IMG/VR virus record: IMGVR_UViG_3300045996_002337 | Coordinates: 186,001-250,000 of that record | Reading direction: 5' to 3' (one strand) | Length of the DNA: 64,000 nucleotides | Shown here: positions 7,157-59,437 of the stretch, one piece after another | How positions within the stretch are numbered: position 1 is the first letter of the stretch | Layout: each line of letters begins with the position of its first letter | The notes under the pieces: model-generated | Told to the model about the DNA's origin: nothing | What the model saw: only the letters and a program-made list of their open reading frames with translations | The model's database searches: none | Translations under genes and position numbers: made by a program

Positions 7157-7969
7157 TCAACGTAATGCGTTAACCTGCTGGAGCAGGCTTTCGTGTTTCG
7201 ACCCTGGTGGTAGCACTCCAAGCAGGTGCATCAAGGTCTGTGCATTATGAGGGGCGTGAGCCCTTCCATCATTATTGAAGAAAATGTAGACTTCTTTGCC
7301 GGCTTCTGCAAGTCGACGAATCATGGCTGCATCGTTCTTCAAGTCTTGGTCTGTGTAGTTACCCCAGTATTTACCGGAGGTTTTTGGCCCGTGTCTGCGA
7401 ATGTAGACAAAATCCGCGGTGTCAGTTGGATCTGTTTCAGTGAAACGGTCTGATGCCACAAGCACTGCGTTGTGACGCTTGAGCTCGTCATACGTCTCCC
7501 GAACAAGCCAAGAGGTGTTGCGCACTTCCAGCGCAAGCTTCAAGCCGCTGGAGTTCAGAAATTCAGCAAGCGGGCCAACTCGATCAAGGAGCTTGCTGCT
7601 CGAGCGCTCTGCGAGCTGCACTAGAACTGGACCTCGTTTGTTGACATCAATCTTGTGAATGCCTTCGACGAAGTACTTCATCAGCTCAATGCCGTCTCTT
7701 GTGTCCCCGTCTGAATGCAGCTTGAGCTGACGCGAATGTGTGAATGACTTTGGCGACTTCAGGACAAGCTTGCTATTTGCATGCATCTTAGCACCCCAAC
7801 GCTCAACTGAATCGGGCTTTGGGATGTTGTAGAAGGACGCGTTAATTTCCAACGTGTTGAAGTGGTCAGCGTAGTACTGGAGCAGATCACCTGTTTTCGG
7901 TGGATAAAATGCTCCATTCTGCCAATGGTGGTACGAGTACCCACTACAACCAATATAAACGTTCTTCAT
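7157..7969 (-). CDS. DUF72 domain protein
   Basis: IGCSGYSYHHW, EINASFY, K-x-PK-x-x-TH, ALEVR-x-x-SW, YIRRHG, YIFFNND...AP-x-NA. Confidence 0.9.
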   Translation of the reverse strand: MKNVYIGCSGYSYHHWQNGAFYPPKTGDLLQYYADHFNTLEINASFYNIPKPDSVERWGAKMHANSKLVLKSPKSFTHSRQLKLHSDGDTRDGIELMKYFVEGIHKIDVNKRGPVLVQLAERSSSKLLDRVGPLAEFLNSSGLKLALEVRNTSWLVRETYDELKRHNAVLVASDRFTETDPTDTADFVYIRRHGPKTSGKYWGNYTDQDLKNDAAMIRRLAEAGKEVYIFFNNDGRAHAPHNAQTLMHLLGVLPPGSKHESLLQQVNALR

Positions 7970-8001: not shown

Positions 8002-8421
8002 TCACTCTTTATTAGTGAGCGCCTTTTCAACAGCCCTATCTTTTGGAATGACGGCGACACGCGGAAGACGGAGAATGAACGGCCAAATTGCAATTGCAGT
8101 TGCCACGGAGGCAATCGCGGTTGCGGCCTTCACCCAGCCCTGTAGCCAGTAAAGTGGGTACCAGATAACAGCGATATCGACGAGGTGAGTCGTGCCGCAC
8201 AAGAAAATGAAGGCGCAGAAGAGCATGAACACCCAACTTGCAATGATGTCCTTGCGCTTGTCGAGGAGAACAAGCAACGCAACGGGGATGGAATAGTAAG
8301 CAAGGGCGATCAACAGGTCCGAGAGGACCATCAGCAGAACTAGATCGCCGTTCCATTGGAAACAATAGCCATGCGGAAGAAGGCCGTTTCTAGCGACCCA
8401 GTTGACTAGGTTATCACCCAT
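8002..8421 (-). CDS. stand-alone ethylene-receptor-like (ETR1-type) 3-TM sensor domain
   Basis: PHGYC...SDLLIALAYYSIP...FCAFIFLCGTTHL...VKAATAIASVATA; retains the D, Y and C-x3-H residues of ETR1-type domains; no kinase domain. Confidence 0.75.
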   Translation of the reverse strand: MGDNLVNWVARNGLLPHGYCFQWNGDLVLLMVLSDLLIALAYYSIPVALLVLLDKRKDIIASWVFMLFCAFIFLCGTTHLVDIAVIWYPLYWLQGWVKAATAIASVATAIAIWPFILRLPRVAVIPKDRAVEKALTNKE

Positions 8422-8451
8422 GTTATTCTCTCATCGTGTGTGTTGAAAGGT

Positions 8452-9126
8452 TTATTTATGGGGCCAGAGAAGATCAAAGTTTCCCGCCATCACCCTATCA
8501 CAGGCCGCGGATCGCCCAGTTCGATGATCCTTTACAAGATTATCTTGAAAGCGGTACGTTCGAATTTTATCGCCACGTTCGCCACTTCCAACCTGTGCCT
8601 TGCGATCAGCTGCCAGCTCCAGGAGCTGACCATTTCGGGCAACGGAATTCAGGCGCACCATTATTTCTGTTTTGGCTTCGTTCAGAGAATTTTCACGTGA
8701 GCGGCACTGCGCTGTCACAATTTCACTTGATGGAATGTGCGTGATGCGACACGAATTTTGGTGCTTGTTTCTATGCTGGCCTCCAGCACCCGTGCCAGAG
8801 TACCATTCTATCTTGAAGTCACGCTCATTGAAGGTGACTCGTTTGATCTCTCCTGGATGGATGATTGCCACCGTGACGGTCGAGGAGTGTACCCGTCCCC
8901 GTCTCTCGGTTGGCGGTATGCGCTGAATCCGGTGTCCGCCTGGCTCGTTGTTGAGCTCTGACAGATCCTCGCCGGTTACCTCAATGCTGAGTTCGCGAGA
9001 ATCAATCAGGCGGGTAGTTCAGCCGACGCGTTGCGCGTGGGCGATGTAGGCTTTAGCCAGGTCCTTCACGAACAGCTTGCTGTCCTCTCCGCCTTCGGCG
9101 GCTCGAATCTCAATAATGCGTTTCAT
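8452..9126 (-). CDS. RF1-like class-I peptide chain release factor (224 aa) containing an in-frame TGA at codon 36 (9019-9021)
   Basis: SD GGAG and ATG at 9126: MKRIIEIRAAEGGEDSKLFVKDLAKAYIAHAQRVG-TGA-TTRL...GGHRIQRIPPTERRGRVHSSTVTV...GAGGQHRNK...RSRENS...IRTYRF. PxT and GGQ motifs are intact and in one frame. Confidence 0.85.
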
Positions 9127-9138
9127 AACTTCTCCAAA

Positions 9139-9213
9139 TGGCGCCCCTGGCAGGAATCGAACCCACATTCACGCTTTAGAAGAGCGGTGTATTTTCCATT
9201 ATACGACAGGGGC
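9139..9213 (-). tRNA. tRNA-Arg(TCT)
   Basis: Cloverleaf, loop CT-TCT-AA, encoded CCA. Confidence 0.9.
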
Positions 9214-9219
9214 AGAGGT

Positions 9220-9738
9220 TTATTTTAACTCGTTTTTCTTCTCTATCTCAACTATTTGTTCAAGAACTGCGGTTGGGTTTGTTTCATCTGAAAGTCCCTG
9301 TGCTTCCGTGCGGTGTTCTTGTCTAACATCTAACCGCTCAGCTATCTTGTCAAGCAGCCGGAGGATAGCTGTGCTCTCGCGTTCAGCCAGCAGGTTAATT
9401 TGCAGGTCGAGTTTGTGTCGCTTGTCTGCTTCTTCAGCTAGACGATTCTGACTCAACAAAAGGAAACCAGAAAGGAGAATGGCCTCGAGCGAGACGAGTG
9501 TCGTGAGCAGGGTAAATGGGAACGGATCAAACTGCCATACAGTCAAATTAAGGGTTGTCCAGCCAATGAAGATGGCTAGATGAACGGCGATGAAGCTGAC
9601 GGTGCCAGCCCATTGTGCCACAGTATGTGCCACTTTTTCCGGGATGGATTGTTTCTTGAGCTGATCTTGCTCGTGCACAAAGATCGCCTCGATGTTCTCG
9701 TGGGTGATCTGCACTGGGTCATTAGGTGCTTCATTCAT
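9220..9738 (-). CDS. DUF1003 family membrane protein
   Basis: FDPFPFTLLTTLVSLEAILLSGFLLLSQNR...DLQINLLAE-x-E motif. Confidence 0.9.
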   Translation of the reverse strand: MNEAPNDPVQITHENIEAIFVHEQDQLKKQSIPEKVAHTVAQWAGTVSFIAVHLAIFIGWTTLNLTVWQFDPFPFTLLTTLVSLEAILLSGFLLLSQNRLAEEADKRHKLDLQINLLAERESTAILRLLDKIAERLDVRQEHRTEAQGLSDETNPTAVLEQIVEIEKKNELK

Positions 9739-9752
9739 GCACCTATTTATGT

Positions 9753-9879
9753 TGGTGGTGGCGGAAGGAATCGAACCTCCCCTGGCCGTTTATGAGTCGG
9801 ATAACCAATTACGGACGGTTGAGCTAACAACGAAAGGTGCAATCGATGTTTACCGTGCTGTCCACTACACTACGCCACC
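9753..9879 (-). ncRNA. tRNA/Y-RNA hybrid: tRNA acceptor, D and T arms with CCA, and a ~50-nt Ro60-helix-like domain in place of the anticodon arm
   Basis: GGTGGCG/CGCCACC-A-CCA, D arm, T loop TTCGATT; insert contains TCG-TTG[TTAGCT]CAA-C-CG and GGTTATCC/GATTGC, shared with the Y-like family. Confidence 0.6.
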
Positions 9880-9884
9880 ATGTT

Positions 9885-9956
9885 TGGAACCGCGGATGGG
9901 ATTCGAACCCACACATCAATCCTTCGGAGGGATCGTGCCGTTCCACCGGCCGCGGT
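9885..9956 (-). tRNA. tRNA-Arg(CCG)
   Basis: Cloverleaf with weak D arm, CT-CCG-AA, CCA. Confidence 0.8.
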
Positions 9957-9957
9957 A

Positions 9958-10033
9958 TGGTGCTCTCGTCCAGGCTCGAACTGGATCCTCCGGATTACGA
10001 AACCGGCATACCACCATGTAATACTTCGAGAGC
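9958..10033 (-). tRNA. tRNA-Thr(CGT)
   Basis: TT-CGT-AA loop, CCA. Confidence 0.8.
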
Positions 10034-10099
10034 ATAGCCTAGATTCGATGTGAGCAGTTTCTACTCAAGTCATCAGTCTCTAGGCGGGACTTTAATTGA

Positions 10100-10181
10100 T
10101 CTGAACAAAGCCTTGCGGCGGCGCGGTCGAGGGCGAGTTCAAGTAAAAGTTGATAACCCTGCGGGTGCGATCCGGTTCAGA
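10100..10181 (-). ncRNA. Y-RNA-like small RNA (no tRNA module)
   Basis: TCTGAA-C-CG...GGTTATC...pyrimidine-rich loop...GCC-GCAA-GGC-TTTG-TTCAGA; homologous to 13170..13248. Confidence 0.6.
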
Positions 10182-10193
10182 AATTTTGTGTGT

Positions 10194-10418
10194 TCAAACA
10201 GCTTCGAGACCCTTTGCGTTGACCTCGAGCTGTTTTCGGATGTACCGCATGAAGAGCATGGCCTTGTCTTCCGCAAGGAAGACACCATCACCACAGTCTT
10301 CGACAGGCACGACGAAGTCAAAGCCGTCGTCAGTCCGGTAGTGAAGCTCGTTCTTGCGATACATCATGAAGCGGACCCGTTTTCCAGGTCCGACAAGTTC
10401 TTTCAGAGTGCTCATCAC
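10194..10418 (-). CDS. hypothetical protein
   Basis: 74-aa ORF coupled to 10415..10771. Confidence 0.65.
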   Translation of the reverse strand: MMSTLKELVGPGKRVRFMMYRKNELHYRTDDGFDFVVPVEDCGDGVFLAEDKAMLFMRYIRKQLEVNAKGLEAV

Positions 10419-10771
10419 ACCGTGTCTCCAATAAGATGGGGCGCGAGGTCTGGTCGATCAGGGTACTTCGCATCGATGGCATCGATCGCAAGGTGGGGCG
10501 ACGTGCCTCGATCCAGTTCGTGGATCTTGGAGAAGCCATTTTCCTTCGTGATTAGTGACTCGTGAGGCGAGATGCCGCCACGATACTTGCCATCACCCTT
10601 CTTGTGCATGAGGTTGCCAGTTGCTGGGTCGATCGAGCCCCACTTTGGCGTGTGCTCGGTCTCGATCGGCTCGACGTAGTACGTCTTGCCGGTGCGATAG
10701 GAGTAGACGATGAACCTGCCCGTGTCGTCGGTGCGACGCAGAAACGCGGAATGTACTTCACGGCTGATCAT
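10415..10771 (-). CDS. hypothetical protein
   Basis: 118-aa ORF with good SD. Confidence 0.7.
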   Translation of the reverse strand: MISREVHSAFLRRTDDTGRFIVYSYRTGKTYYVEPIETEHTPKWGSIDPATGNLMHKKGDGKYRGGISPHESLITKENGFSKIHELDRGTSPHLAIDAIDAKYPDRPDLAPHLIGDTV

Positions 10772-10810
10772 CTTCTTTCTCCTTAAGGGTTATGAGCACT
10801 ATTGCTCGGG

Positions 10811-11146
10811 TTAATTTTTCTCGAATTTGGCTTTGAGCCGCTGATACTGAGCAAGTTCGGCTTCTTTCTTTTCCTTGCGTTGTTGCTTCTTGCGCTCCTT
10901 TGCAAGGAGCTCGATGCGTTCCATCAGTTCAGTATGAGCAGCCTCGGACGCAATGCGATCAGCTTCTTGCGCATCGGTTTCAAGCCGTTGATAGACCAAA
11001 TAGATTTCGTTATCGTAGTAGCCGTGCCCCCTCTGGATGACAGCCGACTCAATTTCTTCTGGAGACAAGTTCGCGAGCAAGTCGCTCAAGCGATGCTGAT
11101 TAGTGATTTCAAAGAGTTGAAAGGTTTCGGTAATCTTTTGCTTCAT
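10811..11146 (-). CDS. hypothetical protein (coiled-coil C-terminus)
   Basis: 111-aa ORF, SD GAGG. Confidence 0.65.
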   Translation of the reverse strand: MKQKITETFQLFEITNQHRLSDLLANLSPEEIESAVIQRGHGYYDNEIYLVYQRLETDAQEADRIASEAAHTELMERIELLAKERKKQQRKEKKEAELAQYQRLKAKFEKN

Positions 11147-11164
11147 AAAAACCTCTGTTTATTG

Positions 11165-11238
11165 TGGTGCTCAATGAAGGAATTGAACCTTCTCTTCATC
11201 CTTACCAAAGATGCGTACTGCCATTATACGAAGAGAGC
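11165..11238 (-). tRNA. tRNA-Thr(GGT)
   Basis: TT-GGT-AA; two acceptor mismatches; CCA. Confidence 0.8.
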
Positions 11239-11244
11239 ATGGAT

Positions 11245-11319
11245 TGGTGGTGATGGTGGGAATCGGACCCACGACACAGAGCTTATGAGACTCCTGCTTA
11301 ACCATTCAGCTTCATCACC
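11245..11319 (-). tRNA. tRNA-Met/Ile2(CAT)
   Basis: CT-CAT-AA; CCA. Confidence 0.8.
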
Positions 11320-11324
11320 ATGTT

Positions 11325-11397
11325 TGGCAAGCCTCCATGGATTTTAACCACGACCTCCGTTCGCGACACGGCGCACTGACAATTGTGCTAAAGACTT
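11325..11397 (-). tRNA. degenerate tRNA, anticodon CGC (Ala?)
   Basis: Cloverleaf with GT-CGC-GA loop, atypical T loop TTAAAAT, lacks the usual Ala acceptor sequence; CCA. Confidence 0.5.
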
Positions 11398-11403
11398 ATT
11401 GTT

Positions 11404-11479
11404 TGGCAACCCCGGTCAGACTCGAACTGACGCCCTTCGCGCTCAGAACGCGACGCTCTACCAACTAAGCTACGAGGCA
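11404..11479 (-). tRNA. tRNA-Gln(CTG)
   Basis: TT-CTG-AG, weak 1:72 pair, G73, CCA. Confidence 0.85.
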
Positions 11480-11488
11480 ACTGATTTT

Positions 11489-11562
11489 TGGCGATCCGTA
11501 GGGGAATCGAACCCCTTTCTTACGCTAGACAGGCGTAGATAATACCAATATATGAACGGACC
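11489..11562 (-). tRNA. tRNA-Asp(GTC)
   Basis: CT-GTC-TA, G73, CCA. Confidence 0.85.
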
Positions 11563-11567
11563 ATGTT

Positions 11568-11642
11568 TGGTGCCTGAGAAAGGAATCGAACCTTAGGTCT
11601 ACCGCTTATCAAGCGGGTGCTCTACCATTGAGCTACTCAGGC
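11568..11642 (-). tRNA. tRNA-Ile(GAT)
   Basis: TT-GAT-AA, CCA. Confidence 0.9.
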
Positions 11643-12012
11643 GTTTTTTGTTTCCTTTGCCACCTTTGGATGAGGCGGCACGGTGCATTTCCTTCCATCG
11701 CTCTTCACCGTATTTCGCGACGTTTTTCGCATATTGCGACGACCATGTTCCCGCTGCTTTTTGATCAAACAGATTGTCACTGGGCGTTCCCCAATACAGA
11801 TGTTTAGGGTTTGAACACGCGTGAACATTACACGCGTGGCACAGAAGGATCTTCATGCCTGCAGGAATTGTCGTTTTAAGCGTGTGAGCTAAAAGACCTC
11901 GATAATGACGGCTGTCCGCTCCTCCAATGAGAATACAGGGCTCAGTCAAATCTAAATGCGCAATACGTTCTGCCCGAGAGCGCTGTATATAGGCTTCAAT
12001 GTCTTCAAACAT
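11599..12012 (-). mobile_element. free-standing HNH (His-Me finger) homing-endonuclease-like gene inside the tRNA array
   Basis: LLCHACNVHACSNPKHLYWGTPSDN motif; own TATAAT promoter near 12019; stop codon lies inside tRNA-Ile. Confidence 0.7.
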
Positions 12013-12032
12013 GATGCATTATAACACAAATT

Positions 12033-12107
12033 TGGTACTCCTGACGGGTTTCGATCCCGCTTCTCAACCTTGAAAGGGTCGTGTCCTAGCCACTAGACGA
12101 CAGGAGT
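12033..12107 (-). tRNA. tRNA-Glu(TTC)
   Basis: CT-TTC-AA, CCA. Confidence 0.85.
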
Positions 12108-12109
12108 AT

Positions 12110-12183
12110 TGGTACCTGCAGAAGGAATCGAACCTTCTTCTCAACGATGTCAACGTCGCGCTCTACCATTGAGCTATGCGGGT
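12110..12183 (-). tRNA. tRNA-Val(GAC)
   Basis: TT-GAC-AT, CCA. Confidence 0.9.
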
Positions 12184-12189
12184 GATGTT

Positions 12190-12264
12190 TGGCGCCGACG
12201 ACGGGACTCGAACCCGCCTAAACCTCATAGACAGTGAGGTGTTCTCCCTGAGAACTACGTCGGC
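12190..12264 (-). tRNA. tRNA-Asp(GTC)
   Basis: CT-GTC-TA, G73, CCA. Confidence 0.85.
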
Positions 12265-12270
12265 AATGTT

Positions 12271-12346
12271 TGGCAAGGGAGGTGGGACTCGAACCCACAA
12301 CAGGCGCATTCAAAGTGCGGTGCTCTACCAATTGAGCTACTCCCCA
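12271..12346 (-). tRNA. tRNA-Gln(TTG)
   Basis: CT-TTG-AA, CCA. Confidence 0.9.
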
Positions 12347-12366
12347 ACAGAAATTTATGTCTTAAG

Positions 12367-12448
12367 CTCCACGATCTGGGCTCGAACCAGACTTGATCTT
12401 TCGATCGCGGATTAACAGTCCGCTGCCACACCCGGCGGCTCTCGTGGA
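12367..12448 (-). tRNA. tRNA-Asn(GTT)-like with long variable arm, no encoded CCA, flanks extend the acceptor stem
   Basis: GCGGA-CTGTTAA-TCCGC; GATC-GAAA-GATC variable arm; CTTAAGCTCCACGA/TCGTGGAGCTTAAG 14-bp stem. Confidence 0.65.
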
Positions 12449-12476
12449 GCTTAAGACACTTACATAATGTTCTTTG

Positions 12477-12548
12477 CTCCAGAGGCAGGGATCGAACCTA
12501 CGACGGACGCATTAACAGTGCGCTGCTCTACCGCTGAGCTACACTGGA
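12477..12548 (-). tRNA. tRNA-Asn(GTT), no encoded CCA
   Basis: Canonical cloverleaf; leader TGTTCTTTGC pairs with trailer GCAAAGAACA. Confidence 0.85.
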
Positions 12549-12577
12549 GCAAAGAACACGTTTCAAAAATACTTAGG

Positions 12578-12651
12578 AGTGACCAGAGGGACTTGAACCC
12601 TCATTATCTGCATTCACAGTGCAGCGCGTCTACCAATTCCGCCATGGCCAC
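12578..12651 (-). tRNA. tRNA-His(GTG), no encoded CCA
   Basis: CT-GTG-AA; leader ACTTAGG pairs with trailer CCTAAGT; C at -1 and T73 are atypical. Confidence 0.75.
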
Positions 12652-12668
12652 GCCTAAGTATTCTTACT

Positions 12669-12744
12669 TGGTACGTCTGAGAGGATTCGAACCTCCAACC
12701 TGAGCCTTCGTAGGACCCTGCTCTTCCAGTTGAGCTACAGACGT
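12669..12744 (-). tRNA. tRNA-Arg(ACG)
   Basis: CT-ACG-AA, CCA. Confidence 0.9.
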
Positions 12745-12750
12745 ATTGTT

Positions 12751-12826
12751 TGGTAGGGGCACAGGGATTCGAACCCTGACTTGACGGATTAAAAGTCCGC
12801 TGTGATAACCATTTCACCATACCCCC
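12751..12826 (-). tRNA. tRNA-Lys(TTT)
   Basis: CT-TTT-AA, CCA. Confidence 0.85.
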
Positions 12827-12841
12827 GTTAGGAGGTACGTT

Positions 12842-12887
12842 TGGCAGACGCGCTAGGCGTCGAAGACATTTGTCGCATTGCGCGTCC
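12842..12887 (-). ncRNA. 46-nt mini-tRNA-like element
   Basis: GGACGCG...CGCGTCT-G-CCA acceptor stem enclosing a small GACA-AA-TGTC hairpin. Confidence 0.4.
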
Positions 12888-12900
12888 TTTCTTTGTTGAT

Positions 12901-12972
12901 TGGCATCCCGTCAGAGAGTCGAACTCTGTCCATGCGTTTTGGAGACGACAGGCCCTAGCCGTAGGCCGAGAT
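12901..12972 (-). tRNA. degenerate tRNA-Trp(CCA)
   Basis: CT-CCA-AA loop, intact T arm and CCA, irregular D arm and anticodon stem. Confidence 0.6.
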
Positions 12973-12984
12973 ATTAACTTGATT

Positions 12985-13078
12985 TGGCTCCCTCGGACGG
13001 ACTCGAACCGCCATATTACGCCTTACGGCCTTTACGTCTGATTAACAGTCAGGTCTCTTACCATTAGAGTACAAGGGA
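12985..13078 (-). tRNA. tRNA-Asn(GTT) with 24-nt variable region
   Basis: CT-GTT-AA; variable arm GCC-GTAA-GGC; G73; CCA. Confidence 0.8.
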
Positions 13079-13086
13079 ATAGAACT

Positions 13087-13161
13087 TGGTGCGCCTCCCC
13101 AGAATCGAACTGGGCTCTCTCCGGTTAAGAGCCGGGACTTCGCCAGCAAAGTTTGAGACGC
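13087..13161 (-). tRNA. tRNA-Lys(CTT)
   Basis: CT-CTT-AA, CCA. Confidence 0.8.
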
Positions 13162-13169
13162 GAAGAAAG

Positions 13170-13248
13170 TCTGAACAAAAGCCTTGCGGCGTGCGGTCTC
13201 AAGGAGGTTCAATAAAAGTGATAACCTTGAAGTTGCGAGCGGTTCAGA
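13170..13248 (-). ncRNA. Y-RNA-like small RNA (no tRNA module)
   Basis: TCTGAA-C-CG...GGTTATC-ACTTTTA...GCC-GCAA-GGC-TTTTG-TTCAGA; homolog of 10100..10181. Confidence 0.6.
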
Positions 13249-13253
13249 TTGTT

Positions 13254-13328
13254 TGGCGCTCCGTAGGGGTTACGATCCCCTCTAGCCAGGTTGAAAGCCT
13301 GGTGACCTCACCAGATGTCTAACGGAGC
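13254..13328 (-). tRNA. tRNA-Glu(TTC)
   Basis: CT-TTC-AA, CCA. Confidence 0.85.
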
Positions 13329-13334
13329 ATTGTT

Positions 13335-13410
13335 TGGTGGGCCCTCACGGAATCGAACCGTGTCCTTCGGAGCTTCAATCCGACGTACGCACCAGCTATA
13401 CCAAAGACCC
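13335..13410 (-). tRNA. tRNA-Phe(GAA)
   Basis: TT-GAA-GC, CCA. Confidence 0.85.
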
Positions 13411-13418
13411 ATAAATTT

Positions 13419-13494
13419 TGGCTGGCCACCGCGGTCTCGAACCGCGAACCCCTGGTTTTGGAGACCAGTGCTCTGCCAATTGAGCTAGTGACCA
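13419..13494 (-). tRNA. tRNA-Trp(CCA)
   Basis: CT-CCA-AA, G73, CCA. Confidence 0.9.
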
Positions 13495-17666: not shown

Positions 17667-17950
17667 CACATCACCTCGAAAGCAAAGTTGAGCAGTTCTT
17701 GGGCACCCCATAGATCGAAGGGCACAGGGTCAGGGGTTTCACCGCAGCAGAACTCTTCGAGCTCGGCAGGTGAGAGCTTCGAGAGGGCAATGTCCACCGC
17801 CTTGATGTCAGCTTCAGCATAACGCTCCTCGACGAGATGCATCACGTGGTTAACAACCGATTCCTCGGTCACCCCACGGTAAATGACGCCACTGTCGTAG
17901 GCAATCTCAATGACGGCCTTGATGAGCGATGGGTACTTGTGTGGGATCAT
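17666..17950 (-). CDS. hypothetical protein
   Basis: 94-aa ORF coupled to both neighbours. Confidence 0.6.
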   Translation of the reverse strand: MIPHKYPSLIKAVIEIAYDSGVIYRGVTEESVVNHVMHLVEERYAEADIKAVDIALSKLSPAELEEFCCGETPDPVPFDLWGAQELLNFAFEVM

Positions 17951-19014
17951 TTTGCAAGCTCGTTTGGAATGAAGGCGCGGCCGGCCCGCCAGTGTTTTTG
18001 CGTTTGAACATGATTGGCGCGAACGAACTTTGCCACGCTCTTGCGAAAATCGCCGTAGCTAAACTCACCAGCAATCCGAACCACGTAACCTTCGTCCTTT
18101 TCAAAGTCTAGACTCTTCTCAATGTCACGAACAGTTTTCTCATCCCACATGCCATCATAAAGAACTGGGACAGGTGTTAGGCCGAGCAGCTCACACCAGA
18201 CGATGGTGTCATCCCACCTCAAGCAGCGGTTCTTTGCATCCCAAATGCTAAAGCACATGAAGTATGAAGGCAGGGCGGTGTAGTGAATCGAGTGCTCGGC
18301 CCAGAGGTTCTCGCCGCAAACACGCCAGCCTTCAGGAAGATTGAAGCAGACGTTCTCGATCAGGAACTTCTTGACCCAGGCCCGGTCTTCGCCACCACGG
18401 CTGTCAATCGAACGTGCGTGAATGTGACCATCGCTGTACGCGGTGGTGTTCTCACCGTCCATCTTCTTGGTGATGACTACACGGCGACCTTCAAACTGCG
18501 AGCAGTCCTTCAGGGCTTTGTCGTCGTCTTGTTTTCCAGGAGACCAGGGGAGGTGGAACGTCCGCTCGTACTTGACGTACGAGGTAAACAGATCCAACGC
18601 TCCACCCGCGGCCAGAACTTTCTGTACGGACTCGTCAAAGAAGAGCTCGCCCTTGGCGCGGCGACCGTCAGCAAGTACTGGGTTTCCCCATTTGTCGTAC
18701 TGATGGTCAGGGTAGAAGTGCGGAGGAACCACGATCTTCGTGATGCCTGCTGCTTGACGCACGTCCTCGACCGAGTAGAACGTTTTCTCGCAGAGAAGAT
18801 GATGCAGCTCGCACACGGTCGCGCCGTTCTCGAGATAGTAGCCACCATCTGGCCACAGCCGCCGCTCGAGAATGTGATGCGCGTCGAGCTTGCCCTCAGG
18901 GGTTTGCGCTGCAGTGATTCCGCAGAAAACGCACTTGTGACCATCTCGAAGGAACACACCTTCGCGGAAGTTGTCTCGAGTAAGTAGTTTGGGCTCTGCC
19001 ATGTTATTCTCCAT
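17947..19014 (-). CDS. HNH-domain / RNA ligase fusion protein
   Basis: N-terminal CVFC...DAHHI...NGATVC-x-x-HH; C-terminal ligase motifs KMDGEN, CGEN, EGYVVR, K-F-V-R. Confidence 0.85.
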   Translation of the reverse strand: MENNMAEPKLLTRDNFREGVFLRDGHKCVFCGITAAQTPEGKLDAHHILERRLWPDGGYYLENGATVCELHHLLCEKTFYSVEDVRQAAGITKIVVPPHFYPDHQYDKWGNPVLADGRRAKGELFFDESVQKVLAAGGALDLFTSYVKYERTFHLPWSPGKQDDDKALKDCSQFEGRRVVITKKMDGENTTAYSDGHIHARSIDSRGGEDRAWVKKFLIENVCFNLPEGWRVCGENLWAEHSIHYTALPSYFMCFSIWDAKNRCLRWDDTIVWCELLGLTPVPVLYDGMWDEKTVRDIEKSLDFEKDEGYVVRIAGEFSYGDFRKSVAKFVRANHVQTQKHWRAGRAFIPNELAK

Positions 19015-33617: not shown

Positions 33618-34712
33618 TCAGGTCAGAGCACCAGCAATTGCTTCGCGGCGAGCCTGCTCAATTGCCTGACCGAGCTCCTTACCTGGAGGAATATCAGGAA
33701 AATCTGCAGCTTTAACTGGCTTTGTAACTGAGGCTGCCCTCCACAGATCAAAAGAGTTCACCTTAGGTGACTCACCAATCGATGGCATCAGTTCAACTGC
33801 TTGCACCAAATCATCGAAGGTAGAGCCTTCGCTCCATGCCTTCGCTGCTTTCAGTAAGTTGAAGACGTCATCAACGGTGCGTTCCATGGTTCGAACCCGA
33901 TTCACATTCTCAAACAGCGTTCGCGTGCGAGTGTCAGCGCTGACACGAACAGTGGTCGAAGACGGAACAGCTGCGAGCGCAGTGTGAAACATGACGCGTT
34001 CTGCTTCATCAACAAACACCGAGACTACTGACGCAGCGGCGATGACAGATTTCAGTCGAGCTGCATCAATGTGACCATACAGGCCTTCGAAGAACAAAAC
34101 GTTTTCATCGCAGTGCATGGCCTTCATGAGCCAGAAAAAGCGCCACGGTGTTTCTTCTTGGAAGACCTTGTGGAGCTCTGCCCAGAAGCGTTCAGCGGGC
34201 AGTTGATTCAGATCGCCGTTCTCGACCATGCGCTTCGCCAAATCCATCGTTTCGGTTGCAACACTGAAGTTGTCGTAGCGTGCAAAGAAGCGGGCTAGCC
34301 GCACCACCCGCAGTGGATCTTCACCGAAGGCAGCAGAGACGTGGCGCAGAACGCGCGCTTCCAGATCTTGCTGTCCACCCCAAGGATCGATGATTTTGCC
34401 GTCCTCATCCTCAGCCATCGCATTGATGGTCAGGTCTCGTCTCGACAGGTCGTCGGCCAGGGTCACACCGTCGGTTTCAACTGCGAAGCCGAGGTAGCCC
34501 TTGCCCGTCTTGCGCTCGGTTCTAGCAAGGGCGAACTCCTCACCACGTTCGTTCAGAAACACGGGGAAATCCGCACCCACCTGCTGAAAGCCCATGGCAA
34601 TCATTTGCTCGGGCGTGGAGCCGACAACGACGTAGTCAAAATCCTTCGGATCTCGCCCCATCAGCTTGTCACGAACTGCACCACCGACCGTGTAGACCTG
34701 ATATGTTTTCAT
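33618..34712 (-). CDS. cca: tRNA nucleotidyltransferase (class II CCA-adding enzyme)
   Basis: VGGAVRD...[45 protein letters not shown]. Confidence 0.92.
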
Positions 34713-34748
34713 AGATGCATTATACACTGCCCACTCTAGGTTGTAAAC

Positions 34749-42631: not shown

Positions 42632-42706
42632 TGGTACCGCCGGCGGGAATCGAACCCACGTCTCAGGCTTAGGAGGCCCGCGCACTTTCCACTGTACTAC
42701 GGCGGT
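42632..42706 (-). tRNA. tRNA-Arg(CCT), isolated
   Basis: CT-CCT-AA, CCA. Confidence 0.9.
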
Positions 42707-55166: not shown

Positions 55167-55243
55167 TGGTGCCCAAGGTCGGACTCGAACCGACAGATTG
55201 CAGGTTTTGAATCTGCTGCCTATACCAATTCGGCTACTTGGGC
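55167..55243 (-). tRNA. tRNA-Leu(CAA) with short variable arm
   Basis: TT-CAA-AA, A73, CCA. Confidence 0.75.
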
Positions 55244-55390
55244 AGTATTTAATTGACACCTTTCGTTTCGTAGCCAAATTACGAGAACCTTCTCCAGTCA
55301 AGGGAGCGTTTGTCGTAAAATCAAACCACGGTCTCGAAGAAGCAAGGTGCGTTCCGAGGCGACTAACTCTCAGTAGCACGTGTCAAAACT

Positions 55391-55484
55391 TGGCGGTGAC
55401 GATGGGATTCGAACCCATGGAGCCCGATGAAGGACCCTCTTCCTTAGCAGGGAAGTGCAATAAACCTGGCTCTGCCACGTCACC
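55391..55484 (-). tRNA. tRNA-Ser(GCT)
   Basis: CT-GCT-AA, long variable arm, G73, CCA. Confidence 0.9.
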
Positions 55485-55696
55485 ATAAATTCTTGCGCGC
55501 TGGTATTCGTTGCAGAACGACTTGTAGCTTTCACCTACCAGCAAGATCCAGTTGCACACCGTCAGCCACTGGCAATCTCCACCTCCGCACTCTTAAGGGC
55601 CGCTGAGGTCTCCCTAGCCTTCTTAACGAATCAGACCAAAACGTTCCTTTAGAGTCAAGGACAACTACCACATAGACGCTGTGGCCTCGCGAATTC

Positions 55697-55783
55697 TGGA
55701 GGAGAATAACGGAATCGAACCGTCACCTGTAAACAAATGGGCTGGCTTTCGAAACCAGTTACGCGCCATGCGTCCTATTCTCC
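55697..55783 (-). tRNA. tRNA-Ser(CGA)
   Basis: TT-CGA-AA, long variable arm, CCA; 5' part overlaps the NADAR stop. Confidence 0.8.
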
Positions 55784-56211
55784 ATGACTAACTTCCAGAG
55801 ATCAGCTCGAATTTCCATCAGCATGATCCCCAGCCTGTTCTTTCCAACACCTCGGCAAACTCCCCAGTACGTGTCGTTCCAGTGGTTAGTTTCCTCGATG
55901 TAAGCATCTCCTGTTGCCAAGAGCTGCGTCATAAACGGTTCCTGTGAGAACTTCTGGATCAAGAGGTCTCTCATGACGTCCTCTTTGATCTGTTCCCAAT
56001 CTTCTCGAATCTGAATCACGCGACCAAACTTCTTTGCCTCTGCGCCAGAAGCCGCCCTTGCGATCTTCTTTCTAAGCTCAATGTCAAGCGTCTTTGCCGC
56101 CTGGTATGCGTGTTCAGTGGATGGAAACGCGACGCCTTCAAACTGGACCCATACGGACCAAAAGTTTGACAGGAACCTATGGTCTCCGCTAAATCCCTTG
56201 ATCTCGTCCAT
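55759..56211 (-). CDS. NADAR (YbiA/DUF1768) family protein
   Basis: FLSNF...STEHAYQAAK...KFSQ...LLATG...E-x-x-x-W-x-D-x-YWG...GKNRLG-x-x-LME-x-R. Confidence 0.92.
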   Translation of the reverse strand: MDEIKGFSGDHRFLSNFWSVWVQFEGVAFPSTEHAYQAAKTLDIELRKKIARAASGAEAKKFGRVIQIREDWEQIKEDVMRDLLIQKFSQEPFMTQLLATGDAYIEETNHWNDTYWGVCRGVGKNRLGIMLMEIRADLWKLVMENRTHGA

Positions 56212-56224
56212 CTTAGTTTCCTAT

Positions 56225-56332
56225 TGGCTCCCCAACCTGGGCTCGAACCAGGGACCTGCGGATTAACTAGAACACCCGATAAACCAGATGTTCGGTGTCA
56301 GTCCGACGCTCTACCAACTGAGCTATTGGGGA
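56225..56332 (-). tRNA. tRNA-Asn(GTT) interrupted by a 32-nt insertion in the anticodon loop
   Basis: Canonical Asn body; loop reads CTG[ACACCGAACATCTGGTTTATCGGGTGTTCTAG]TTAA; removing 32 nt restores CT-GTT-AA. Confidence 0.8.
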
Positions 56333-56338
56333 ATTGAT

Positions 56339-56665
56339 TTACCAGCTAACGGTAACGTTTGCGATAAAACCGTTGCGGCTGTTCACCGTTACTGTAAAGC
56401 CATCATTCTGCATGAGAACAACCGCGGCTTGCAGCTGATCGTCAATTTCTTGTTCGGTTAGGTGAAAGATCCCCAGCGCCCCGATTGAAACGTTGACGTT
56501 TAACGTCTTCGTAAACAGCCCAGCTTCAGCAGCATTTGAAACGGCGTTCTCGACGCTTCCATAGAAGCTGTTCATGACTTCAGCCTTCGTTGCGTCCTTA
56601 GCTTCAGGCGTGGTCAGAAGTGCAAGCTGTTCAACAGCGCGGGCATTAGCATCACTTGCTAGCAT
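56339..56665 (-). CDS. hypothetical protein
   Basis: 108-aa ORF, SD AAGGA. Confidence 0.65.
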   Translation of the reverse strand: MLASDANARAVEQLALLTTPEAKDATKAEVMNSFYGSVENAVSNAAEAGLFTKTLNVNVSIGALGIFHLTEQEIDDQLQAAVVLMQNDGFTVTVNSRNGFIANVTVSW

Positions 56666-56679
56666 AACATTTCCTTAAT

Positions 56680-56763
56680 TGGTGCGTACGGGGAGACTCG
56701 AACTCCCAATCCTTTCGGCGCTGGCTTCTAAGACCAGAGTGTATACCATTCCACCACGTACGC
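56680..56763 (-). tRNA. tRNA-Leu(TAG)
   Basis: CT-TAG-AA, variable arm, CCA. Confidence 0.9.
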
Positions 56764-56865
56764 ATTGTTTGGGTGACTAAAAGCCGGTGGGGTATCCGAG
56801 GTCAGGCTTCAACTCCATCCTCTTCCCATCCTCCGTTTACTTTCCTTACTTTCAGTCAGTTGTTT

Positions 56866-56939
56866 TGGTTCCTCTAGGTGGAATTGAACCACCGTCAGCC
56901 CCTTATAAGGAGGCCGCTCTACCATTGAGCTATAGAGGC
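56866..56939 (-). tRNA. tRNA-Ile(TAT)
   Basis: CT-TAT-AA; G1.A72 mismatch; CCA. Confidence 0.8.
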
Positions 56940-56940
56940 A

Positions 56941-57273
56941 TCAGATGGCAAAGCACTCAGCATGAGCTTTCACGTGAGTGAGAACATCACCACGGGCTGC
57001 AAAAACCTTTGTGCTATCATCAAACATCTTGGCATGAACGACCACTTTGCGGGTATTTCCAATGGTCACACCGCGAAACGTCTTGCCTGTAACCGTGATC
57101 TCGCACTCAATGCTGTCGTTGAAATTGTTCTTGATAACGCAGCGACCAGCCGACTTATTCCACAGACACCCTGGAGTAAGCTCAACGAGATCACGTTGTC
57201 GCTCTTGCCCATGTGAGGCAAGTGACATGAAAAGTGCAAATGCACCGATAAAATAAGCAGCAAGTTTCTTCAT
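56941..57273 (-). CDS. hypothetical exported protein
   Basis: Signal peptide, 4 Cys. Confidence 0.65.
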   Translation of the reverse strand: MKKLAAYFIGAFALFMSLASHGQERQRDLVELTPGCLWNKSAGRCVIKNNFNDSIECEITVTGKTFRGVTIGNTRKVVVHAKMFDDSTKVFAARGDVLTHVKAHAECFAI

Positions 57274-57481
57274 GTCAACATCTCCAACGTGGGGTTATTT
57301 GATTTCGTATTTGTCCGTTTTTCGGTATTAGGGTTCAGCGGTAACCCAGGGAATTCTTGATGGGCCAGGGTAAGCATCCATCATGTCCTACTTCGCCCGT
57401 TGCAGCTCCGGCTTTCGCGAGATACTGACGTGTCTAAGGACTTTGCGTCTGTCGGTGCACCGACAGGGTCGCCAAATTAAC

Positions 57482-57618
57482 AAAGCATAGAAACAACAAA
57501 AGGCGCTATCGGGAATTCCTGCCCCTGGACCACCTGCAGGATGCCACGAATCGAACGGGCTTGGGTTTATTTCCAATAATAGTAGATAACCGACAACAAA
57601 CGGTTGATTCTATGCTTT
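57482..57618 (-). ncRNA. Y-RNA-like RNA with degenerate T-loop module
   Basis: AAAGCATAGAA terminal stem; CAA-C-CG / TTG-TTG helix; GTTATC/GATAGC; TTCGATT hairpin. Confidence 0.55.
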
Positions 57619-57864
57619 GCCAACATTGGTGCGGGTGGAGGGACTTGAACCCTCAAAGCCGAAGCTGTCGGATTTTAAGTCCGATGTGGTTACCGATTTC
57701 ACCACACCCGCGCGTGTGATCCCCTCTGTTATCTCTAAAAGAGCGTCGAAACATTTTCCACAATTCATTGCACAGTTCGTTTTCATCATGATCTCTTCCG
57801 TCGTAAGAGGGAGAAGATCACGAATTGTCTGTTCAGAAACTCCAGCACAGATACAAACGATCAT
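57610..57864 (-). CDS. bfd: Bfd-like [2Fe-2S] ferredoxin whose frame runs through tRNA-Leu(TAA)
   Basis: MIVCIC...CGKC motif; own TATAAT promoter at ~57870. Confidence 0.75.
   Translation of the reverse strand: MIVCICAGVSEQTIRDLLPLTTEEIMMKTNCAMNCGKCFDALLEITEGITRAGVVKSVTTSDLKSDSFGFEGSSPSTRTNVGKA
57627..57711 (-). tRNA. tRNA-Leu(TAA)
   Basis: CT-TAA-AA, variable arm, CCA. Confidence 0.9.
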
Positions 57865-57903
57865 GAATCATTATAACACTAGTGGGAGCTAAGTGGAACC
57901 TAT

Positions 57904-58077
57904 TTACCGAAGAGCGATCATGCGCGAACGAAGACGTTCTTCATTGTCATACTCCGAGATCCAAAATTCAATCTCCTGTGGAGATTGCGGGTTCTTCGAA
58001 GCGACGAAACGTTCGAGCGCCGTCATTTGACGGGTGGAGAAAGCCTGCTTAAGCCAAGCGAAAATACGTGAGATCAT
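57904..58077 (-). CDS. small protein, DUF3563-like (57 aa, not in ORF track)
   Basis: MISRIFAWLKQAF...LERFVASKNPQSPQEIEFWISEYD. Confidence 0.5.
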   Translation of the reverse strand: MISRIFAWLKQAFSTRQMTALERFVASKNPQSPQEIEFWISEYDNEERLRSRMIALR

Positions 58078-58318
58078 GGTTCATGATCCTTTCTTTAAAA
58101 AGTTCCTTGTGGGAACGGTTTAGTGAAAGGCAGAACCGACATCCATCGACTACTCTGTTGAGTGATCCGCCATAGCCAACATTATTTACAGGTCTTGCTT
58201 CTTGTTAGGCTCTGTCCGCGCCTTTGCCACCGCGTAAGCGACAAAACGAACAGTAGCAACAAGCGCGATAAGACCCTTCAAAAACTTACTCATACGATCT
58301 TTCTTACAGTGGTGAAAA

Positions 58319-59266
58319 TTATCTCTCTACAATCACCAGCGTTCCCTTCTCAACGAGGTCAGCAACTTCAAGCGCGTCCCAGTTAGTGAGACGAATGCAG
58401 CCGTTAGAAGCGGTCTTTGAAATCTTTGAAGGTTCTGGTGTACCGTGAATTCCGTAATGCTTACGCGACAGCGCGATCCAGACTTCGCCAACTGGGTTGT
58501 TGGGGCCTGGACGAAGTGTTACCTTGGTGTTTGTCCCTGGGCTGACAAAGCGTTCAGGGTCGTAGTTGTAATACGGGTCCTTTGCGACTGCGACGACCTT
58601 CAGCTGACCAAACGGTGGAGGGCTCTTAGGAGAACCAAGCGTCGTTGGGTAGAAGCCGATAAGCTTCTCGCTGGCGTCATAAATGCGTACCGAACTTTCG
58701 GACTGGCTTACGACGATCTTCGCTACCTTCGTCGACAGGGTTTGCCCAACGCCCGGCACCTTGAGGACCGTGCCCTCAACAAGCTCAACGTCAGGATTCA
58801 ATTTCTTCAGCAGCTTCGGGCTGATCTGGAACTTCTCACCAAGCGCTTCTTCAAGCGACGTGTAGTGGAGATTGCCAGCCTTGCTCATACCCAGCATCGT
58901 ACGGGGGATTGAACGTTTGAGTGGCTGGTTCACATCTTCAGCCGTCAGTGTGTAGCTTACCATCAGGTCCGAACCGTTGTCACCCAGAGCGGTGAGGGTT
59001 GGCTGATCAATTTCTCCAGATGGCTCGAGACCTTTCTCTTGTTGGAAAGCTTTCAGCGAGCGCCGAACATTCGAACCCATCACGCCGTCAATTTCACCAA
59101 CTGAAAAGTGCCAACGATCGAGAAGGACTTGAACGCGTAGTGTCTGCGTGAACTCCTGTTCCTCGGTCATTTGTGGTGCTGAAGCAGGCTTAGCTGCTGG
59201 AGCAGGGGTCTGGGCCATCGCAGCAGAAACGCTGAGGGCCAAAAAGGTCATCAAGATCTTCTTCAT
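58319..59266 (-). CDS. L,D-transpeptidase (YkuD) with peptidoglycan-binding domain
   Basis: Signal peptide; QVLLD...GEIDG...ALKAFQ PG-binding domain; YGIHGT...ASNGCIRL. Confidence 0.92.
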   Translation of the reverse strand: MKKILMTFLALSVSAAMAQTPAPAAKPASAPQMTEEQEFTQTLRVQVLLDRWHFSVGEIDGVMGSNVRRSLKAFQQEKGLEPSGEIDQPTLTALGDNGSDLMVSYTLTAEDVNQPLKRSIPRTMLGMSKAGNLHYTSLEEALGEKFQISPKLLKKLNPDVELVEGTVLKVPGVGQTLSTKVAKIVVSQSESSVRIYDASEKLIGFYPTTLGSPKSPPPFGQLKVVAVAKDPYYNYDPERFVSPGTNTKVTLRPGPNNPVGEVWIALSRKHYGIHGTPEPSKISKTASNGCIRLTNWDALEVADLVEKGTLVIVER

Positions 59267-59433: not shown

Positions 59434-59437
59434 ATAA

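Follow-up and report, generated by a model that had tools for sequence, protein, structure and literature searches.

A domain-1-less release factor gene of the RF1 type with a conserved in-frame UGA: comparative evidence for programmed readthrough in phages

In a 64,000-nucleotide stretch of DNA (hereafter, the window) taken from a 349,660-bp IMG/VR phage record, two pieces of one reading frame separated by an in-frame UGA were found to constitute a single gene, which encodes a 224-residue release factor of the RF1 type lacking domain 1 (mini-RF1). We favor, with moderate confidence, the interpretation that this UGA undergoes programmed readthrough to Trp and that the output of mini-RF1 is coupled in this way to the competition between RF2 and tRNA-Trp. 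The comparative signatures of the recoding are unusually complete and support this part of the interpretation well, in the absence of protein, ribosome-profiling or reporter data and with the efficiency unmeasured. The dependence on RF2, the role as a sensor and the benefit to the phage are inferred only.

The features of the locus are collected in Table 1. The N-terminal piece reads MKRIIEIRAAEGGED...RVG and then meets the TGA. The ATG lies 13 nt past the tRNA-Arg(TCT) gene, and the GGAG box starts 4 nt past the end of the same tRNA. The mini-RF1 gene is thus situated within a phage tRNA array, most related loci are arranged alike, and co-transcription of the gene with the array is probable. 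An Rfam scan of positions 8300-9300 gave a tRNA as the sole match. An earlier note, based on the sequence only, had reported a Shine-Dalgarno box with the ATG at 9126, 35 codons, the TGA at 9019-9021 in a UGA-A context, and the PPT and GGQ motifs, all of which held in full at these positions. Its remark that the ORF track shows only a truncated C-terminal part also held, as the automatic ORF list of the window contains only a 139-aa, GTG-started tail of mini-RF1. Two elements were added by the present analysis, namely that domain 1 of the release factor is wholly missing and that the signal includes an RNA structure downstream of the stop.

Table 1. Positions of the mini-RF1 gene, its parts and two tRNA genes within the window.
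Feature	Position	Strand	Remark
mini-RF1 gene, both pieces	9126..8452	minus	single RF1-type gene without domain 1
Shine-Dalgarno GGAG	9132..9135	minus	5 nt 5' of the ATG; direct sequence reading
start ATG	9126..9124	minus	opens the mini-RF1 frame
N-terminal piece, 35 codons	9022..9126	minus	beta-strand IEIRA and AEGGED helix tip, RF domain 2
in-frame UGA, codon 36	9019..9021	minus	proposed recoding site, conserved Trp position; next base A
context GGC-UGA-ACU-ACC-CGC	9010..9024	minus	P-site codon is Gly GGY
stem-loop	8958..9009	minus	starts 9 nt past the UGA; candidate readthrough stimulator
C-terminal piece, 188 codons	8455..9018	minus	rest of domain 2, domain 3, domain 4
PPT motif, domain 2	8916..8908	minus	C-terminal piece
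GGQ motif, domain 3	8784..8776	minus	C-terminal piece
true terminator TAA	8454..8452	minus	same frame as the N-terminal piece, unbroken after the UGA
tRNA-Arg(TCT)	9139..9213	minus	directly upstream of the mini-RF1 gene, same strand
tRNA-Trp(CCA)	13419..13494	minus	phage-encoded

The identity of the protein was established by profile and structure comparisons. In the Pfam search, the 35-aa piece corresponded to positions 103-132 of the PCRF domain (E=1.5e-6) and the C-terminal piece to positions 151-194 of PCRF, followed by the RF-1 (GGQ) domain; since both map to the same PCRF domain at successive positions, the two pieces are parts of one domain. With the NCBIfam models, the long piece was ranked as prfA (153.6 bits) ahead of prfB (86 bits) and prfH (41 bits), and a homologue read with W at the stop gave 193, 115 and 48 bits, respectively. 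The 35-codon piece covers positions 115-144 of the prfA model. The prfA match begins at about position 115 of 361 and reaches 150-193 bits, which is below the equivalog cutoffs of 400-423; domain 1 (about 100 residues in RF1) is absent and the criterion of a full-length prfA match failed. Moreover, RF1 structures match the family at E=6e-40, and the family aligns with the solved structures of Thermotoga, Streptococcus, E. coli and Thermus RF1 from about residue 87-112 on. In the alignment with Thermotoga RF1 (2fvo), the UGA position is paired with the Trp of ...KGW....

The motifs HRIQRIPPTE and GGQ are invariant in the family, and the determinants are RF1-like (an upstream Gln, PxT and a following T/S, not SPF). 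As PPT is found also in bona fide full-length RF1 genes of bacteria of the CPR group, it is compatible with an ordinary RF1. For factors with Q...PxT, UAA and UAG are the known target codons (Ito et al. 2000; Laurberg et al. 2008). From these determinants, and without a release assay, we infer that mini-RF1 reads UAA and UAG and not UGA. The tip of the AEGGED helix is reported to contact the first base of the stop codon (RF1 structural work, Laurberg et al. 2008), and the 35-codon piece of mini-RF1 carries what we take to be this helix tip.

Selection was found to act on both sides of the stop. The pN/pS of the 35-codon piece is 0.28 (69 homologues); past the stop, the value is 0.51 over the first 25 codons and 0.22-0.36 over most of the remaining gene. 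In 65 of the 69 genes there is no in-frame ATG within 60 codons past the stop, and the "starts" assigned by gene callers to the downstream piece differ in place among homologues. Purifying selection, the presence of the helix tip, the varying starts and the lack of a conserved internal ATG therefore indicate that a functional factor needs the joined pieces.

From two scans of IMG/VR, which gave 227 and 427 relatives, we retrieved 160 loci. Most of the relatives reside on contigs of 100-520 kb. All 100 distinct viral homologues, the most diverged of which share 48% protein identity with the window copy, have TGA at the codon in question, and neither TGG nor TAA nor TAG was observed there among these 100 genes. 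Chance cannot account for such conservation. The TGA is thus not unique to a single assembly, nor do the homologues all carry TGG, and, given the purifying selection described above, a sequencing error, a recent nonsense mutation and a pseudogene can be excluded as its source. Entries of this family in protein databases fall into two length classes, one of 164-186 aa (called after the stop) and the other of 222-228 aa with W at position 36; in the two W-containing entries for which the DNA was checked, the codon is TGA, both being code-4 gene calls on short contigs. Within distant clusters (35-51% identity), L086 and L087 have a real TGG at the codon, L089 has TGA at the site, and L088 has TGG at the site and TGA four codons later. 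The alignment with Thermotoga RF1 and the TGG of L086 and L087 show that Trp is the natural residue at the UGA position, and the claim of the earlier note that the TGA falls on the conserved Trp of release factors consequently held. A megablast search of the locus against 50,697 phage records gave no match. A tblastn search of the same collection detected only RF1/RF2 genes with at most 39% identity and, therefore, no isolated phage of that collection carries the mini-RF1 family.

The sequence immediately around the stop is constrained as well. Among the 100 viral genes, the codon before the UGA is GGC (73) or GGT (22), and the base after it is A (79), G (16) or C (5), never T. The three codons past the UGA are strongly biased (ACT 31/32, ACC 36/38 and CGC 54/61) and have the lowest synonymous diversity of the gene, with a mean deviation of -1.4 bits against -0.5 bits in the next independent segment. 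In the diverged sequences, a pyrimidine occupies position +9 in 72/72 cases and C occupies position +10 in 69/72.

Further downstream, there is an indication of RNA structure. The 78 nt past the UGA have a mean folding z of -2.74, compared with -0.7 for control segments of the same genes, and in 70% of cases z is below -2. A long stem is recurrent, whose 5' arm begins about 8 nt past the UGA in most relatives (codons R-L-I-D) and whose 3' arm (codons D-L-S-G-L) follows some 50 nt later; the stem-loop of the window copy has -23.6 kcal/mol (z=-3.6). This stem was first seen by per-sequence folding and then tested as a named structure. In a 49-sequence alignment, 77% of the helix cells are paired and eight of ten pairs change on both sides (e.g., one pair is A-U in 19, G-C in 17, G-U in 11 and other in 2 sequences). 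The covariation of the stem exceeds that of all 500 shuffles and of all slid controls, the +1 slide being close (0.219 vs 0.272 observed), and the stem arms of the same gene pair better than arms swapped within the family (-17.2 vs -10.9 kcal/mol, p=3.5e-10). RNAalifold did not recover the long stem de novo and returned only a trivial 4-bp hairpin around the stop (codon alignment, later A3), probably due to bulges that shift between subclades. No excess structure past the site was seen in the two TGG relatives, L086 and L087. Taken together, a conserved 3' stem-loop is likely and is not proven.

The other end of the gene is also distinctive, as the terminator of mini-RF1 is TAA in 94 of the 100 genes, compared with 62% of the long ORFs of the same loci (binomial p=1.5e-13). 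Such a preference fits a gene that needs a proper ending while UGA is leaky.

The family is not restricted to phages. A scan of one genome per bacterial species revealed 124 relatives with the QR(V/I)PPTE motif, some of which are the full-length RF1 genes of CPR bacteria. Seven distinct bacterial copies, including those of Thalassospira xianhensis, Rhodovibrio sodomensis, a Pseudobdellovibrionaceae MAG, and Sphingomonas and Sphingobium MAGs, have the phage-type TGA at the same codon, and other bacterial copies (e.g., on a Cupriavidus plasmid) have an in-frame TGA 11-15 codons further on. A different arrangement was seen in 44 bacterial loci (Myxococcota, Thiobacillus, Novimethylophilus, Planctomycetota, Acidobacteriota and others), where the N-terminal piece is read in the -1 frame with respect to the remainder. 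At the junction all 44 have CTT, followed by TGA (28) or TAG (16) and in no case by TAA, and the next base is C in 37 of them; the upstream consensus is CGGAGG-GGT, with GGAGG three nt upstream. This arrangement, mostly placed one codon after the phage UGA site on a Leu replacing the Trp, is judged from sequence alone to be the frameshift cassette of prfB.

Particular bacterial copies deserve mention. On Variovorax megaplasmids, RefSeq has two entries, a hypothetical protein of 56 aa and a "peptide chain release factor-like protein" of 172 aa, which form one frame joined by GGC-TGA-CTC. The frameshifted copy of Thiobacillus denitrificans is located inside a 26-tRNA array, beside tRNA-Trp. A Pfam search of the neighbors of the Thalassospira and Minicystis copies gave no informative matches. 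Culturable strains that bear relatives of the gene include Variovorax sp. WDL1, Thiobacillus denitrificans DSM 12475, Minicystis rosea DSM 24000, Pyxidicoccus fallax DSM 14698 and Thalassospira xianhensis MCCC 1A02616. In a quick IQ-TREE phylogeny, the phage clade, with TGA at the site in 73 of 76 members, was separate from a bacterial clade in which frameshift, readthrough and no recoding are mixed and TGA and TAG switch between close relatives. We infer, again without experimental data, that recoding at this spot is a family trait realized by two mechanisms. This family-wide pattern gives strong independent support for regarding the phage UGA as a regulatory device.

It was also necessary to consider how UGA is used elsewhere in this DNA. 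A crude count of ORFs with "TGA as sense" is uninformative at 51% GC, and a gene model based on codon usage was applied instead. Of the 98 genes it gave for the window, 52 end with TGA, 43 with TAA and 3 with TAG, and thus the statement of the earlier note that TGA is a normal stop of other genes held; many ATGA stop/start overlaps are present among them. In the related loci, TGA terminates 30% of long ORFs. Among 1071 tRNAs identified with ARAGORN in 85 sources (window and 10-kb flanks), none had the UCA anticodon, three had CUA, and none was a tRNA-Sec; tRNA-Trp(CCA) occurred within 10 kb in 26 of the 85 sources. Inspection by eye of the tRNA-Trp of the window revealed an ordinary C11-G24 pair and no recognizable miscoding feature (Hirsh-type D-arm). 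No other gene of the window is convincingly interrupted by TGA. Several same-frame pairs split by TGA (34749/34727, 41394, 28719 and 7159) were considered and rejected as ordinary neighbors; the gene of the CCA-adding enzyme begins with its own N-terminal domain and is, therefore, an ordinary neighbor of the preceding ORF. The standard code outside the mini-RF1 UGA is thereby shown for the window and 10-kb flanks. A suppressor tRNA elsewhere in the genomes of about 350 kb is not excluded, as the scope was limited to the 64-kb window and its 10-kb flanks.

UGA can be decoded by a normal tRNA-Trp, most readily when the next base is A (Q-beta A1 protein; Engelberg-Kulka 1981). It is well established that RF2 alone terminates at UGA, and structures located 6-9 nt past a recoding site act at the mRNA entrance. 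Against this background, the following mechanism is proposed. The signal would consist of a P-site Gly codon GGY, UGA with a non-U next base (mostly A), the constrained 9-nt 3' context and the stem-loop about 8 nt downstream, which would stand at the mRNA entrance when the UGA occupies the A site. The near-cognate, phage-supplied tRNA-Trp(CCA) would insert Trp at codon 36; the tRNA-Trp(CCA) encoded in the window is the likely decoder, and the inserted residue, which has not been measured, is almost certainly Trp by inference. Since a Q...PxT factor should not read UGA, the outcome at codon 36 would be set by host RF2 versus tRNA-Trp. Efficient termination at the UGA would release a 35-residue peptide, and limiting RF2 or abundant tRNA-Trp would give full-length mini-RF1, which may then handle termination at UAA, and at the rare UAG, for the heavy translation load of the phage, sparing RF2. 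A rise in mini-RF1 when UGA termination becomes limiting would be a plausible event while the host translates a 350-kb phage, most genes of which end with TGA or TAA.

The earlier note had proposed an RF1-like gene with probable programmed readthrough, and this is supported by conservation, selection, context, the stem-loop and the bacterial frameshift. Its further suggestion, that the full-length protein is made only when host RF2 drops, so that the gene acts as a stress sensor, remains an inference, which fits the TAA terminator and the analogy to prfB; neither a fixed low-efficiency attenuator nor self-recognition of the UGA is excluded. It should be stressed that an RF1-type factor does not read UGA, and the proposed circuit would hence be cross-regulation and not a clean autoregulation of the prfB kind. 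The TGA/TAG flips in bacteria are no less consistent with "any slow stop" or with an omnipotent factor than with an RF2-specific sensor. A role of mini-RF1 in the rescue of damaged ribosomes is possible and is not excluded. The window encodes also an RNA ligase and the CCA-adding enzyme.

Among the rival explanations, the one that survives best, and that remains possible, is a fixed attenuator, in which the programmed UGA would set a constant low yield of mini-RF1, unresponsive to RF2 or tRNA-Trp. As an example of a rationale, mini-RF1 might be toxic in excess. The conservation evidence is equally compatible with this explanation, and TGA and TAG are interchangeable in the bacterial relatives, which suggests that it may be of no consequence which factor is sensed. 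On the other hand, a weak ribosome-binding site would give the same yield and evolve more easily; TGA to TGG is one transition, yet it is unseen in 100 phage genes; the prfB-type cassette of the relatives is a known sensor design; and TAA, which is also a stop, occurs at the bacterial recoding site in 0/44 loci.

True autoregulation, in which mini-RF1, despite its PPT, would recognize UGA and end its own synthesis at codon 36, is unlikely. It would be the simplest logic by analogy to prfB, and UGA/UAG switching among close relatives is easiest to understand if the factor reads both codons. Against it stand the RF1-like determinants (Q, PxT and the following T/S), the preference of the HMM search for prfA over prfB (153.6 vs 86 bits) and the PPT of bona fide full-length CPR RF1 genes.

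Two further alternatives appear very improbable. According to the first, the locus would be a code-switch module, i.e., the phage would reassign UGA to Trp late in infection and the RF1 gene would become readable afterwards. In its favor, TGA-recoded Jade phages carry RF1 beside a suppressor tRNA and TrpRS (Borges et al. preprint), and the mini-RF1 gene lies in a neighborhood of translation genes. However, none of the 1071 tRNAs of the 85 sources has the UCA anticodon, TGA is the commonest true stop of the window and participates in coupled ATGA overlaps, no other window gene is convincingly TGA-interrupted, and a global reassignment would make the local context and the hairpin needless. According to the second, there would be two products without readthrough, a 35-residue peptide and a separately initiated C-terminal protein, as the C-terminal models of 139-186 aa given by gene callers might suggest. 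This is contradicted by called starts that vary between homologues, by the lack of an in-frame ATG within 60 codons past the stop in 65/69 genes, by the N-terminal piece being part of the same fold and bearing the helix tip for the first stop-codon base, and by a frame that is continuous in every case. Finally, a pseudogene, a sequencing error or hairpin-directed selenocysteine insertion at the UGA is all but excluded: TGG to TGA is one transition and the hairpin past the UGA is superficially like a bacterial SECIS, but the TGA recurs in 100 independent assemblies under purifying selection, no tRNA-Sec was found among the 1071 tRNAs, both RF1 and the TGG relatives have Trp at this position, and the apex of the hairpin is variable.

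Beyond the readthrough interpretation favored above, a bolder reading may be offered, only tentatively and with more doubt than belief. It holds that there is a widespread, undescribed group of domain-1-less RF1 paralogues, carried by jumbo phages, megaplasmids, tRNA arrays and chromosomes, which nearly always have a termination-sensing switch in the first 30-46 codons. In phages, the switch would take the form of hairpin-assisted UGA-to-Trp readthrough, and Myxococcota, along with many other bacteria, would use a +1 frameshift of the prfB kind with UGA or UAG as the stop. If this were true, programmed recoding would be seen for the first time in an RF1-type factor, as would a structure-stimulated signal for Trp readthrough in a bacterial system, and mobile elements would bring a "termination-capacity homeostat" into the cell.

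Concerning novelty, regulatory recoding in release factor genes is already known, and the broader mini-RF1 family is apparently unannotated. In the literature searched, which is incomplete, no description was found of an in-frame UGA in a phage RF1 gene or of frameshifted RF1-like paralogues. A review of release factor evolution mentions neither phages nor frameshifting nor readthrough (PMC6514570), surveys of programmed frameshifting have prfB as the sole release factor (PMC3711429; PMC12421855), and a reviewer comment in the 2006 PrfH paper states that the RF1 family lacks regulated recoding. Annotation pipelines miss mini-RF1, either by truncated calls or by a wrong switch to code 4. The locus would offer a compact (about 100 nt) natural bacterial readthrough cassette with a 3' structure, which may be used to study how mRNA structure in the entrance channel biases RF2 versus tRNA and for tunable UGA suppression. 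It also suggests that, besides tRNA supply, jumbo phages may keep watch on termination capacity and correct it.

Phage-borne release factors as such have been recorded before. Surveys of huge phages list RF1 and RF2 genes (PMC7162821), surveys of tRNA arrays note RF-1 genes (PMC5966550), and in the TGA-recoded Jade phages the RF1 gene is written in the standard code (Borges et al. preprint). Mini-RF1 shares with them the position of a phage RF1 by tRNA genes and the proposed adjustment of termination in the host cell. Those genes have no internal stop, whereas here a genome with the standard code has a conserved in-frame UGA only in the release factor gene. PrfH (RFH), a paralogue paired with RtcB2, is similar in the absence of domain 1, in its horizontal spread and in its RNA-repair neighbors (in the window, the RNA ligase and the CCA-adding enzyme), although no RtcB was found among the annotated neighbors in the window. 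Mini-RF1 differs from PrfH in reaching only 41-48 bits with the prfH model (cutoff 166.65), in keeping the canonical PxT and in scoring best as RF1.

[quoted passage not shown] 2012, PMC3521657). Theirs is an omnipotent factor of the eRF1/aRF1 type in a eukaryotic virus, and ours is a bacterial RF1-type factor of a phage with a single UGA. UGA readthrough in alphaviruses and plant viruses is stimulated by a 3' stem-loop (Firth et al. 2011). The phage gene shares with those systems the UGA, a spacer of roughly 8 nt and an extended stem-loop, with the difference that they operate on eukaryotic ribosomes with eRF1; to our knowledge, SECIS apart, no bacterial or phage counterpart of such readthrough has been described.

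In the coat gene of Q-beta, the leaky UGA that yields the A1 protein is read by tRNA-Trp, with a UGA-A effect (Weiner and Weber; Engelberg-Kulka 1981). Mini-RF1 resembles it as a phage gene in which a normal tRNA-Trp reading UGA-A would extend the protein. In Q-beta, however, both the short and the long product are functional and their ratio is structural, whereas in mini-RF1 release-factor function is possible for the long product alone, the stop is at a conserved Trp inside a domain, and there is a probable conserved 3' stem-loop.

The closest parallel is prfB, the gene of RF2. In both cases a release factor gene is cut early by a stop whose termination efficiency would decide on its synthesis, and the bacterial mini-RF members bear GGAGG, CUU, UGA/UAG and C at the homologous site, just like prfB. 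The phage gene is different in having no change of frame, no CUU and no SD-like stimulator; its frame 0 continues after GGC-UGA-A, and a 3' hairpin is present instead. Moreover, the phage factor is of the RF1 type, so that the UGA is read by another factor (RF2), and its site is in domain 2 (codon 36, without domain 1), in contrast to the prfB site in domain 1. Regulated recoding of release factors has been known only for RF2, and the family described here would extend it to the RF1 type, in two mechanistic forms at the same site.

Among the relatives of the mini-RF (the RF1-type release factor lacking domain 1), the copy on plasmid 2 of Variovorax sp. WDL1 is represented in RefSeq by two separate entries, one of 56 aa labelled as a hypothetical protein and one of 172 aa labelled as a "peptide chain release factor-like protein". 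Both pieces belong to a single reading frame with the junction GGC-TGA-CTC, and, since the two proteins are one frame across TGA, recoding at this locus has remained unannotated. In several more distant relatives, the in-frame TGA does not occupy the Trp codon, and it is instead found 4 to 15 codons 3' of it (the gene of L172 carries two TGA codons). The in-frame TGA seems to occur at two hot spots; counted from the EIR motif, these lie at positions of about 30-31 and 41-46.

The 47 tRNA genes of the window all lie on its minus strand and between them cover nearly all amino acids. Among the window's 98 predicted genes, only 3 end in TAG, which is thus hardly used as a stop. The mini-RF gene of one phage subclade is followed directly on its 3' side by a tmRNA gene, and a tRNA with the amber-reading CUA anticodon is located about 3 kb beyond the latter. 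The phage arrays also include tRNA-like genes whose "anticodons", as reported by ARAGORN, have 2 or 4 bases (ga, gagt, tttc, ctcc, and gtaa); these genes may represent odd anticodon loops or intron-containing genes. Besides the tRNA arrays, the window carries genes of an RNA ligase and a CCA-adding enzyme/poly(A) polymerase family protein, a combination that suggests a region for tRNA repair and translation maintenance. The product of the gene directly 3' of the mini-RF is a membrane protein of 139 aa that matches ETR1_N, the N-terminal domain of ethylene receptors (E=2e-35), a domain unusual in a phage.

Coordinates of the mini-RF genes and associated features (local to each locus)
Feature	Locus	Position	Strand
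Mini-RF, Variovorax sp. WDL1 plasmid 2 (NZ_LR594690.1)	L242	2779-3483	
Mini-RF, displaced TGA	L088	551-1222	
Mini-RF, displaced TGA	L172, L190, L187, L191, L215, L178		
Frameshifted mini-RF, Minicystis rosea	L181		
Frameshifted mini-RF, Thiobacillus denitrificans	L189		
Frameshifted mini-RF, Pyxidicoccus fallax	L227		
Frameshifted mini-RF, Novimethylophilus	L235		
26-gene tRNA array	L189	615-6441	
CPR full-length RF1 with PPT	L201, L202, L206, L217, L220, L222, L226, L228, L231		
tRNA genes	window	9139-13494, 42632-42706, 55167-63952	minus
tmRNA	L029, L050, L063	about 10522-11512	
CUA-anticodon tRNA	L050	14001-14077	
CUA-anticodon tRNA	L063	13713-13788	
CUA-anticodon tRNA	L083	13902-13976	
tRNA-like gene, 2-/4-base "anticodon"	L012	2580-2652, 6647-6735	
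tRNA-like gene, 2-/4-base "anticodon"	L022	4095-4169	
tRNA-like gene, 2-/4-base "anticodon"	L025	2664-2763	
tRNA-like gene, 2-/4-base "anticodon"	L043	2955-3028	
CCA-adding enzyme/poly(A) polymerase family protein	window	33618-34727	minus
RNA ligase	window	17947-19014	minus
139-aa membrane protein (ETR1_N)	window	8002-8421	minus
DUF72 neighbour	window	7157-7969	
DUF1003 neighbour	window	9220-9738	

The bacterial mini-RF clade is adjoined in the quick IQ-TREE phylogeny by full-length RF1 genes from CPR bacteria (Saccharibacteria and Parcubacteria groups); in the products of these genes, too, the PxT motif reads PPT. In the isolate genome of Thiobacillus denitrificans DSM 12475, the frameshifted mini-RF gene sits within a tRNA array, immediately preceded on its 5' side by tRNA-Trp(CCA), and this array has the appearance of a mobile tRNA-array unit. 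The cassette stop is TGA in 28 and TAG in 16 of the 44 interrupted bacterial genes (loci within L179-L241), in none of which TAA was found at this position, and TGA and TAG are exchanged even among closely related genes. In its order, i.e., GGAGG, 3 nt, CTT, TGA or TAG, and C, the interruption is a +1 frameshift cassette like that of prfB, the RF2 gene.
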